In this document: in pieces, positions 1 to 15,200 of the stretch
Layout: each line of letters begins with the position of its first letter
Numbering within the stretch: position 1 is the stretch's first letter
Assembly: GCA_002269645.1 (NCBI GenBank)
Contig: NIVC01000934.1
Location: 124,001-188,000, forward strand
Origin: Macrostomum lignano
Taxonomy: Eukaryota
DNA: 64,000 nucleotides
Direction: 5' to 3'
Notes under the pieces: generated by a model
What the model was told of the DNA's origin: nothing
Databases searched by the model: none
The model's input: only the letters and a program-made list of their open reading frames with translations
Translations under genes and position numbers: made by a program

Positions 1-220
1 AGCAGGATGGAGACGATGATGGCCACGTAGGTGGTGGTCTCGCTCTCCCTGCCTGCGCTGCCTCCGCCCTGCTCGATGCGCTCGTTGTGCGAGGAGCCTC
101 CGCGACCTGCGCTCGGCGACTGCGGCGGCTTCGGCCTGCCGGAGTTCGGCGGCTGCGGCCGCTGCAGCGGCGACGGCGGGTGCGGCGGCGCTTCCGTGGG
201 CGGCGGGTTGACGACCAGCT
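1..220 (-). CDS. Duplicate DDR juxtamembrane/TM exon (5' part; runs off window edge); orphan 3' half of a DDR paralog
   Basis: Near-identical to 12669-12888, with the same phase-1 acceptor (ccgcccctcag|AG CTG GTC, exon starts at 220). Translates ELVVNPPPTEAPPHPPSPLQRPQPPNSGRPKPPQSPSAGRGGSSHNERIEQGGGSAGRESETTTYVAIIVSIL, with 4 aa differences from the main copy and no stop. Confidence 0.8.
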
Positions 221-227
221 CTGAGGG

Positions 228-12200: not shown

Positions 12201-15200
12201 ATGACGAGGCGGGGCCGCGCGTACGTGCCGAGCCCGCTGGTGTACAGGCCGCTGGCGCCGCTGAGGCCCGGGAAGGCCGGCGGCTGCTGCGGGCCGTACA
12301 GCGTGGCGCTGGCGTACTCGCGAGCGGCGCCAGAGACGGCGGCGGCGGCGGCGGGGGCGAACTGCGCAAAAGAGGCGGGCGCGTAGGTGTAGCAGCAGTC
12401 CGGTGCGCTCAGGTCGGTGCGCTGCTCCTCCTCGTCCTCCGAGTTGGGCAGGCTGGTGTAGATGCTGCCGTTGGCTGCCTTGCCGTTGATCAGCATGGCT
12501 GGCCGGCCGCTGCTGAAGTCCAGGTGGATGCTCTCCGCGTTCTTGGCCTGCTGGTGCACCGCTGACTGGCGCCGGCCCGCCGCGTGTCCGCCGCTTCGCT
12601 GCTTCTTGCGAAGGAGGCGCCGCCGCAGGCAGAGGAAGGCGATGGCGAGCATCAGCAGGACGGCGCCCAGCAGAATGGAGACGATGATGGCCACGTAGGT
12701 GGTGGTCTCGCTCTCCCTGCCTGCGCTGCCTCCGCCCTGCTCGATGCGCTCGTTGTGCGAGGAGCCTCCGCGACCTGCGCTCGGCGGCTGCGGCGGCTTC
12801 GGCCTGCCGGAGTTCGGCGGCTGCGGCCGCTGCGGCGGCGACGGCGGGTGCGGCGGCACTTCCGTGGGAGGCGGGTTGGCGACCAGCTCTGAGGGGCGGG
12901 TGGAGACAGCAGCAGGTGAGGAGGATGGAGACAGCAGCAGGGGAGGCGGATGAAGACAGCAGCAAGTGAGGCGGATGAAGACAGCAGCAGGTGAGGCGGA
13001 TGGAGACAGCAGCAGGTGAGGCGGATGGAGACAGCAGCAGGTGAGGAGGATGGAGACAGCAGCAGGTGAGGAGGATGGAGACAGCAGCAGGTGAGGCGGA
13101 TGGAGACAGCAGCAGGTGAGGCGGATGGAGACAGCAGCAGGTGAGGCGGATGGAGACAGCAACAGGTGAGGCGGATGGAGACAGCAGCAGGTGAGGCGGA
13201 TGGAGACAGCAGCAGGTGAGGCGGATGGAGACAGCAGCAGGTGAGGCGGATGGAGACAGCAGCAGGTGAGGCGGATGGAGACAGCAGCAGGTGAGGCGGA
13301 TGGAGACAGCAGCAGGTGAGGCGGATGGAGACAGCAACAGGTGAGGCGGATGGAGGCAGCAGCAGGTAAGGCGGATGAGGAGCGGATAGAGGGCGGATGA
13401 GGGGCGGATAAGGGCGGATGGAGAGTGGATGAGGGGCGGATGAAAGGCGAATTAAAGACAGATAAACATGGGTGAGGGGCGGATAAAAGGCAGGTGTGGA
13501 AGCCCTTCTTTTTCAATTCCCAGACGTCTAAACTCCTCAGTTAAGCACAAAATTCTCCCTCAGCTCCGCCAGATCCCAAAACCACTGCGGATGCCCCAGC
13601 CCGAGTCTGCCGACCCATCGAAGAGCCGCAAAGTGAAATCAGGTCAAGCGAGAGGGCAGGTGCCTCACAATGTCATGAAGAACACTTTTCCCACTTGCAT
13701 CTTCAGGCCCGCTTGCAAAGCGAAGACTTCTGCTCGGGATATTGTGGGATATCTGGCCAAAGATCACGATCAGCTGGGACCCGCAATTCCAAGATGAAGG
13801 GGAGGCTGGGAGCGGATGCAGCTTATAATAACCTGGACGCTGTCCGCGAGAGTCACTTCAGAGACGCCAGGAATTTCAATTGCAGAGTTTGCGCAGAATC
13901 CCTCCGTGATCTGCGGTGTTTTCCCAAGTGGGAGACTGTCCGGCTCAGTGAGGGGTTTCTGGGAAATTGTTCCCGATTTCAGGGAAATTGTTCCCGATTT
14001 CATTTTGACTGGCTGTAAACAGGCTCTGTACTGAATAACTGTCTGTAAACAGGCTCTGTACTGAGTAACTGTCTGTAAACAGGCTCTATACTGATTAACT
14101 GTCTGTAAAAGGCTCTGTACTGAATAACTGTCTGTAAACAGGCTCTGTACTGAATAACTGTCTGTAAACAGGTCTCTGTACTGATTAACTGTCTGTAAAA
14201 GGCTCTGTACTGAATAACTGTCTGTAAACAGGCTCTATACTGATTAACTGTCTGTAAAAGGCTCTGTACTGAATAACTGTCTGTAAACAGGCTCTGTACT
14301 GATTAACTGTCTGTAAGCAGGCTCTGCAACTCTTCAGGCCAGAGCCGCAGCAGCAGAAGACAAGAACAGAAATTCGCTCAACAAAAAGTTTCTCAACACC
14401 GGATTTTCGGCCCGAGGGTCCAAGAGCTGTGAGACAGAGACAGAGCAGAGCCAGTGACTCATTGCTGCTTCACATAAACTGTGCCGGTGGAGAGAGAAGG
14501 AGCGAGAGAGAGAGAGAGAGAGAGAGAGAGAGAGAGAGAGAGAGAGAGAGAGAGAGAGAGAGAGAGAGTGCAGGAAGTCGCTGCAAGTCGGGCTTTCCTG
14601 CGGGCCGGCGGCTCTCCGCCCTCACCGCGTTTTAAAGTCCGAAAATCAGAGCTTGAGGGCTGCGGTATAATTGAAGGTGGCTTCAGGTGTCACAGGTGTC
14701 TGGGCAATGCAGCTTGGAGACTGTGACATGCTGTGTGACGTGCTGAATACAGAGGCAGAGAGGTGACGAGCAGAATGGCTGAGAAATCACAAAACCGCAG
14801 TCGCCAATCCCTCGCATTGAGCTGCCATCTCATGCAAAACCAGCCGTCCCGCCCGTCCCAAGCAGCCGCAAAGAAGGCAAAAGCCAAGCCATGCGGACCC
14901 CTCAATTCCAGTCCGGAGCAGCCGCAGCTGCAGAGTGATGAAGCTGGAGTCTCCATCGATTCCCCCAGATTTGTGGCCAGTTTTCTGGGCAACAAAAGCA
15001 GAAGCCGCTTGCTGCTTTTTTGTGCGCCAGAAACAAATGAGAACAGAAAGTGGGGAACTCAGCAGCCGGAATCACGGAGGCTGGGGCGGCCGCTTGTTTT
15101 TAGGGACCGTGAGTAAGCTGATGAAGGCAGCGTGCAGCCCCCCTGAGCTTGTTAGCAGCTGTGTGAGATGAGACACTGCGGACCGCACCCGAGAGCCGCT

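Follow-up and report, generated by a model that had tools for sequence, protein, structure and literature searches.

The flatworm Macrostomum lignano carries, within 64,000 nucleotides of contig NIVC01000934.1 (GenBank assembly GCA_002269645.1, positions 124,001 to 188,000 of the forward strand; hereafter the window), a complete discoidin domain receptor (DDR) tyrosine-kinase gene and, at the left edge of the window, a second copy of the 3′ half of this gene. Does this orphan provide the receptor with an alternative intracellular half, does it act as a kinase on its own, or was it simply carried along in a duplication? Our answer, to which we give a probability of about 0.6, is that it is a real, young and unprocessed partial (3′-half) gene duplicate and that the orphan is probably silent. 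We refer to the parental 3′ half as cassette A and to the orphan as cassette B. The DDR and ankyrin-repeat kinase genes of the locus lie on the minus strand of the window, and cassette B continues beyond its left end. The left flank (21.8 kb, L003:2495-24262 in gene-sense orientation) was recovered via the ankyrin-kinase paralogue BOX15_Mlig023755g1, L003 being NIVC01000934.1:102233-126494 reversed. L003:1-2494 is 100% identical to window 2494→1, a window coordinate being equal to 2495 minus the L003 coordinate.

An intact 3′ half without an ectodomain

The first-pass annotation had described window 1-1430 as a copy of the transmembrane (TM) exon of the DDR gene and of the end of intron 5. Using blastn, this segment indeed aligns with 12669-14056 at 91.07% identity over 1444 columns (E = 0). 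The shortfall in identity comes mostly from a difference in copy number of a 25-bp minisatellite; the unique part of intron 5 differs by 3.8% between the two copies, with a 206-bp stretch that is identical (1107-1312 = 13728-13933). The copied exon is preceded by ...CCCCTCAG|AG at position 220, a context identical to that of the parental exon, which starts at 12888. The acceptor is thus intact and the frame behind it open, again as first described: the 220 bp of exon 6 within the window show six A/B differences, of which four are replacements (A4V, V11A, P19L and P35S) and two are synonymous.

The left flank, where a copy of exons 7 and 8 was to be sought, contains both of them, intact. Exon 6 of cassette B (897 nt in total) begins in the window with the stalk and the start of the TM helix (1-220, minus strand) and continues to L003:3171; exon 7 lies at L003:3984-4801 and exon 8, ending in a TAG stop, at L003:6608-6832, both also on the minus strand of the window. 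Their tblastn identities to the parent are 293/303, about 98% and 75/75, respectively. The GT/AG splice sites are the same in A and B, both end in TAG, and both coding sequences are in frame (1950 nt in A and 1941 nt in B). Disruption of the downstream exons of the copy, which had been named as a sign against the proposal, was looked for in the left flank and is not seen there: the 1941 nt of the B coding sequence and its six splice-site positions contain no frameshift, premature stop or lost splice site. The kinase motifs GAGQFG, VAAK, HRDLACRN, DFG and PIRWMAWE are all intact. A loss of function of cassette B would therefore stem from its absent 5′ half and not from lesions.

This absence is equally clear. 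Across the window and its 21.8 kb left flank, discoidin and DS-like sequence occurs only at 34642-21577, which agrees with the earlier statement that no ectodomain exons lie upstream of the copy. Nothing resembling an ectodomain was found between 8989 and 221 or in L003, and in cassette B Pfam shows a tyrosine-kinase domain only. Exon 6 of cassette B is preceded by duplicated DNA from the end of intron 5 (221-1476, minus strand), which contains the 25-bp minisatellite. Cassette B is a DDR-derived fragment and not a DDR.

The parental receptor gene

The parental gene, on the minus strand, comprises exon 2 (34522-34642), exons 3 and 4 with the discoidin domain (31034-31196 and 25591-25698), exon 5 with the end of the discoidin domain and the DS-like domain (21577-22270) and the three exons of cassette A: exon 6 for the stalk, the TM helix and a long juxtamembrane region (11983-12888, the counterpart of 1-220 and its leftward continuation), exon 7 for most of the tyrosine-kinase domain (10322-11139) and exon 8 for the end of the kinase C-lobe and the TAG stop (8989-9213). 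A candidate exon 1 at 43100-43160 (minus strand), found by a pattern scan only, reads MPAKLLKLLLLLIVQAYLLQ, which is signal-peptide-like, followed by a consensus phase-1 donor (AAG|GTGAGT); if it is counted from its start at 43160, the gene is ~34 kb long. The donor of exon 5 (TCG G|GTGAGC at 21577) is in phase 1, the junction codon G+AG giving Glu as in the M. lignano paralogues. Exons 2–5 match PF00754 (F5_F8_type_C, E = 9e-9) and PF21114 (DS-like, E = 6e-39), both above the gathering scores, and the kinase half matches PF07714 (E = 1e-74). The protein thus has a single TM helix, a long juxtamembrane region and a C-terminal tyrosine-kinase domain in which all of the catalytic motifs searched for were found (YVAIIVSILLGAVLLMLAIAFLCL, GAGQFG, VAAK, HRDLACRN, DFG and PIRWMAWE).

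The nearest annotated relatives are the paralogues BOX15_Mlig018138g2 and BOX15_Mlig008695g1, with 49–53% identity to the parental DDR; in tblastn searches the ectodomain is 50–59% identical to both over ~240 residues. A protein search with the ectodomain as query (E ≤ 1e-30) returned no matches and missed even these paralogues, and is not readable as an absence of annotated relatives. The proteins nearest to the DDR query are all from M. lignano, led by UniProt A0A1I8FF19, a frameshift-ridden model of the same DDR 3′ half from the ML2 assembly, with ~100% identity per block in shifting frames. The cassette A protein has no 100% match among the 5.8 billion sequences searched, and the parental DDR, cassette B and ankyrin-kinase copy A are all missing from the NCBI protein set. 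Among the papers searched, none deals with DDRs in Macrostomum or with this duplication.

The 3′ tail of intron 5 in front of cassette A (12889-15009, minus strand) contains the 25-bp minisatellite and a 30-bp one (13959-14351). The 25-bp minisatellite adjoins the acceptor of exon 6, where an AG-free zone of 77% pyrimidine extends over 616 nt in A (12889-13506) and 657 nt in B (221-879). Such an extreme AG-exclusion zone implies either that the branch point is very distant or that the polypyrimidine tract is unusually long.

Anatomy of the duplication

A tandem duplication of ~12.6 kb had been proposed at first. The same orientation of the two copies, the 12,668-bp offset between the copied exons and the orphan TM–kinase module are all borne out, but the unit is shorter (~11.5 kb) and a spacer of 2.05 kb lies at the junction. 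Unit A runs from 15009 to 3528, and unit B, 13.5 kb in all, from 1476 leftwards beyond the window edge to L003:14542. The unit contains ~2.1 kb from the end of intron 5, exons 6–8, intergenic DNA and a whole ankyrin-repeat kinase gene. Collinear blastn blocks in the same orientation (94.5–100% identity) link L003:1 to 14534 with window 14056→3575, in one contiguous sequence. A retrocopy origin of B was also considered and rejected, introns 6 and 7 being kept in both copies.

The 5′ end of unit B is a 33-bp match of 1444-1476 (minus strand) to 14976-15009 (E = 3e-6, and E = 3e-7 in a second comparison). Unit B is without the segment of A at roughly 14975-14090 (~0.9 kb of the intron tail), which includes most of the 30-bp minisatellite. 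The A/B match ends at ~1476 and is followed by a stretch of 42% GC, so that the break in homology near 1477 into AT-rich DNA was correctly placed. A short inverted repeat, AAAAGCAG...CTGCTTTT (window 15000-15040, minus strand), contains this 5′ breakpoint, and B keeps the downstream (3′) arm only. At the other end, the A/B homology stops in a 21-bp minisatellite just past the ankyrin-kinase stop (3530-3852, minus strand, corresponding to L003:14257-14542). The AT-rich spacer between the units (1477-3527) has its own 11-bp and 39-bp minisatellites and carries AATAAA/ATTAAA signals at 3200, 3116 and 3069. Apart from matches among these minisatellites, no source for it was found in intron 5 above 15009, in the DNA after unit B, in the rest of 86 kb of the contig or at the DDR paralogue loci.

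This unique spacer stands between the units and does not recur beyond unit B, so the duplication is not a simple head-to-tail one, and its junction requires something further, be it an insertion, a deletion or a more complex event. The location of the breakpoints in or beside minisatellites suggests a possible unequal exchange or replication slippage together with a secondary insertion. No relevant paper turned up in a literature search for tandemly duplicated genes and expanded gene families of M. lignano.

Age and constraint

The alignment of A with B covers 646 codons and shows 12 non-synonymous and nine synonymous changes (Nd = 12, Sd = 9), giving dS = 0.018, dN = 0.0084 and ω = 0.46. Two coding indels, of 3 and 6 nt, are in frame and lie within GCC runs. 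The non-coding divergence is 2.4–3.8%, the figure of 6.3% for intron 7 being inflated by satellite misalignment. The orphan cassette is young and fully intact; at a divergence of about 2%, however, an intact open reading frame is expected by chance and is not evidence of use. An ω near 0.5 is what one constrained and one free copy would give, and a binomial test against neutrality does not reject neutral evolution (P = 0.068).

The A/B differences could be polarized at three kinase-domain sites only. At two of them, R546D and A553T, which flank the SDVWSF motif, the residues of B occur in 0 of 95 DDR homologues and A keeps the family-typical ones; codon 546 reads CGC in A (window 10411-10409) and GAC in B (L003:4712-4714), and codon 553 reads GCC in A and ACC in B. 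At the third, R524H, B departs from the residue common to A, A0A1I8FF19 and BOX15_Mlig018138g2.

Rival readings: chimera, alternative half or independent kinase

M. lignano, a hidden polyploid, had its whole genome duplicated recently, and its Mlig_3_7 assembly contains redundant duplicated sequence, purge_dups having taken out 46% of the scaffolds (PMC8629364, PMC10468722). In such a genome, A and B might be homeologous or haplotypic versions of one locus that were mis-chained in a Canu contig, B coming from a second full-length DDR; homeologues could plausibly differ by about 2%, as A and B do, and the junction adjoins minisatellites. We nevertheless find this quite unlikely, and the duplication is very probably real. 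The sequence runs unbroken across the junction, and the sole N run of the window (59304-59444) is distant from it. Had there been a mis-join, the spacer would also be expected to resemble intron 5 above 15009, the sequence following unit B or both, but no match to either was obtained. Moreover, models from the ML2 assembly show both an A-type cassette (A0A1I8FF19) and a B-type exon 8 with ankyrin-kinase B and gag sequence (A0A1I8IPZ7, 100% identical to L003:6608-7095 compared with 96% for copy A of the window), although this support is partial because ML2 may share read data. Whatever the status of the junction, this type of unit has been tandemly duplicated at least once, because on the B side a third ankyrin-kinase gene is preceded by DDR debris, namely 56 bp of exon 7 (L003:15587, 89% identity) and 152 bp of intron 6 (L003:18067, 93%), both in sense orientation.

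If the duplication is real, we may ask whether the orphan is used. The first-pass annotation had pointed out that exon 5 ends in phase 1 at 21577 and could join either cassette; the phase does match the acceptors at 12888 and 220. Transcription of the DDR gene would then sometimes pass cassette A and ankyrin-kinase A, exon 5 splicing to 220 to give one ectodomain with two intracellular halves. In favour of this, both acceptors have the same context, cassette B and its kinase motifs are completely intact, the DNA from the stop codon to the next gene is free of AATAAA and ATTAAA in both DDR copies (in A, from the DDR stop to the ankyrin-kinase start), and long introns are tolerated in this genome, where DDR paralogues span 27–44 kb. 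The phase match is not evidence of use, however, because it was inherited automatically through copying, and the proposal requires a 21.4-kb intron that skips an identical nearer acceptor, three good exons and the stop of cassette A. Between the cassettes lies the same-strand ankyrin-kinase gene A, with a TATA-like motif before its start and AATAAA at 3116 and 3069, so that A and B do not form one transcription unit free of an intervening gene or terminator. The motif, TATAAAAG, lies about 35–40 nt upstream of the annotated 5′ end of ankyrin-kinase copy B; all three ankyrin-kinase copies share the start sequence, which in copy A lies at window 6079. Little functional diversity would be gained, because the two halves differ by 12 residues and two in-frame deletions (3 residues), mostly in low-complexity regions, and the unusual kinase substitutions of B resemble relaxed constraint. 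Among the annotated or predicted proteins searched, no model joins a DDR ectodomain to either cassette, the search with the ectodomain as query being unreliable. This use of B as a 3′ half appears highly improbable. Alternatively, the orphan might be expressed alone, from a promoter in the spacer or by spliced-leader (SL) trans-splicing at 220, yielding an ectodomain-less, ligand-independent kinase. About 30% of M. lignano genes are trans-spliced, with the leader CGGTCTCTTACTGCGAAGACTCAATTTATTGCATG (PMC8629364), and an acceptor without an upstream cis donor is a classic substrate for this reaction; the reading frame, splice sites and catalytic motifs of B are intact and the first ATG of its exon 6 is in the DDR frame. 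Yet in this frame no Met occurs before M80, which already belongs to the TM helix (LLM|LGIAFLCL), and a product starting there would have neither a signal peptide nor a full TM segment. An initiator provided by the leader itself was considered and rejected: the leader end ...TTGCATG joined to AGCTGG... reads the wrong frame, which stays open for ~85 codons. The stop of ankyrin-kinase A is 3.6 kb from the acceptor at 220, or an estimated distance near 2 kb once minisatellites are subtracted, which exceeds the 1-kb operon criterion for M. lignano (PMC8629364). No promoter, 5′ exon or initiation codon was found upstream of the TM helix of B, and no gene is annotated on it: NCBI calls none in L003:1-10000, although it calls both flanking ankyrin-kinase genes. 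We consider independent expression unlikely. Overall, both the use of B as an alternative 3′ half and its use as an SL-trans-spliced orphan are disfavoured from what the sequence suggests, and a use of the orphan in either form, spliced to the DDR or as an independent kinase, seems improbable.

We therefore return to a partial duplicate that is probably silent. A unit of ~11.5 kb was copied in the same orientation, probably during the growth of a lineage-expanded ankyrin-kinase array, with the DDR 3′ half carried along as a passenger. Exon 5 of the DDR would normally splice to the nearer cassette A. Having no ectodomain, no start codon before its TM helix and no identifiable promoter, cassette B is most likely silent or transcribed non-productively, and becoming a pseudogene; that it is intact through youth and not through use is the least certain step of this scheme. 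Several points weigh against it. The silence of B is deduced and not observed, and little weight attaches to the lack of an annotated gene on B, since the NCBI protein set misses the parental DDR as well. Read-through past cassette A could occur since no AATAAA or ATTAAA follows the DDR stop, and the orphan acceptor has a plausible route to expression in a genome in which about 30% of genes are trans-spliced (PMC8629364). An ω below 1 and a coding divergence (0.7–1.3%) lower than that of the introns are also compatible with gene conversion or with purifying selection acting on both copies.

The ankyrin-kinase array and the rest of the window

The search to the left of the window also concerned the ankyrin-kinase gene, and a second copy does follow cassette B. 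Copy A occupies 3847-6079 (minus strand, ATG at 6064) within the duplicated unit, and copy B, annotated as BOX15_Mlig023755g1, L003:10001-14262. The copies align over window 6621-3575 and L003:9458-14534 with 95–97% identity, and copy B has gained several ANK modules of roughly 106 residues relative to copy A. Within the gene, a 49-bp minisatellite (window 4285-4674; L003:12750-13778) has a unit made up of the last part of a coding exon (AV[K/R]DFSKQ...) and the start of the following intron; this unit occurs about eight times in copy A and about 21 times in copy B. Because the unit spans exon end and intron start, the 5′ splice-site region is itself tandemly reiterated. Further on, at L003:23455, a third ankyrin-kinase gene begins. 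We also considered whether B is followed by another complete unit and rejected this, the 56-bp and 152-bp fragments being the only DDR sequence there. Gag-like retroelement sequence with CCHC zinc knuckles lies between the second and third ankyrin-kinase genes (L003:15908-16817 on the plus strand and L003:19316-19999 on the minus strand). Of the two UniProt models that touch the locus, A0A1I8IPZ7 fuses DDR exon 8, ankyrin-kinase B and gag in one 1563-residue model, and A0A1I8FF19 is frameshifted.

The ankyrin-repeat kinase belongs to a large expansion specific to M. lignano, with dozens of BOX15 and UniProt paralogues at 34–88% identity, some members of the family having caspase domains in place of kinase domains. 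We infer that the locus is a growing array of units, each made of a DDR 3′ half and an ankyrin-kinase gene.

The minisatellite density of the window is extreme, especially in 1-30000: the first 30 kb contain at least 22 direct-repeat families with periods of 8–57 bp, mostly in introns and intergenic DNA. Many long open reading frames are spurious because these minisatellites leave all three frames open. Near-identical GA/GAA-rich microsatellite blocks and minisatellite reading frames of the ‘ISDTSYLRHF’ type lie on both sides of the N run, at 57221-58066 and 59451-60054, and may reflect a local assembly duplication or a collapsed repeat.

Significance and comparison with known systems

For M. 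lignano this is mainly a point of annotation, the DDR, the orphan and ankyrin-kinase A all being un-annotated, and RNA interference, CRISPR or expression work on the DDR must reckon with a copy that is about 98.9% identical in coding sequence. The locus also offers a clean snapshot of an ankyrin-kinase array growing in minisatellite-rich DNA and dragging along part of a neighbouring gene. Were B spliced to the ectodomain or expressed alone, it would represent an unusually young diversification of a signalling domain, with a receptor diversified or converted into a cytosolic kinase by partial duplication in a hidden-polyploid flatworm.

The parental gene shares the layout of DDR1/DDR2-type receptors (discoidin, DS-like, TM, long juxtamembrane and tyrosine-kinase regions). 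The paralogue loci BOX15_Mlig018138g2 and BOX15_Mlig008695g1 differ from it in having a single cassette, no ankyrin-kinase gene within 10 kb and no duplication; among the three M. lignano DDR loci compared, the duplication is specific to this one.

Duplicated, phase-compatible exons behind a shared donor recall the mutually exclusive exons IIIb/IIIc of FGFR2, which arose by tandem exon duplication, and the clusters of alternative 3′ exons of Drosophila mod(mdg4) and lola. Such systems are defined by alternative use in mRNA. Here, however, what was duplicated is a whole terminal cassette of three exons that ends in a stop of its own, and the two copies are separated by an independent gene on the same strand. 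If the orphan were expressed, its analogues would be ALK-ATI, a kinase-only isoform of a receptor tyrosine kinase (RTK) that arises from an intronic transcription start, and the truncated retroviral RTK oncogenes, which likewise present an RTK intracellular region without a ligand-binding ectodomain. In cassette B, by contrast, neither a promoter nor a 5′ exon nor an initiation codon was found ahead of the TM helix, and a start at its first in-frame Met would truncate that helix.

The kind of event, a partial duplicate produced by the growth of a tandem array, is already well known. The human-specific truncated paralogues SRGAP2B/C and NOTCH2NL are partial duplicates of the same general type: the duplication is recent, a breakpoint is intronic, part of a multi-exon gene was copied together with its introns and neighbouring DNA, and the copy is near-identical with an open frame. 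Those functional copies keep the 5′ end and the promoter, whereas the M. lignano copy is a 3′ half without promoter, start codon or signal peptide, and 3′-half copies without a promoter are usually silent fragments unless they gain a new 5′ end.

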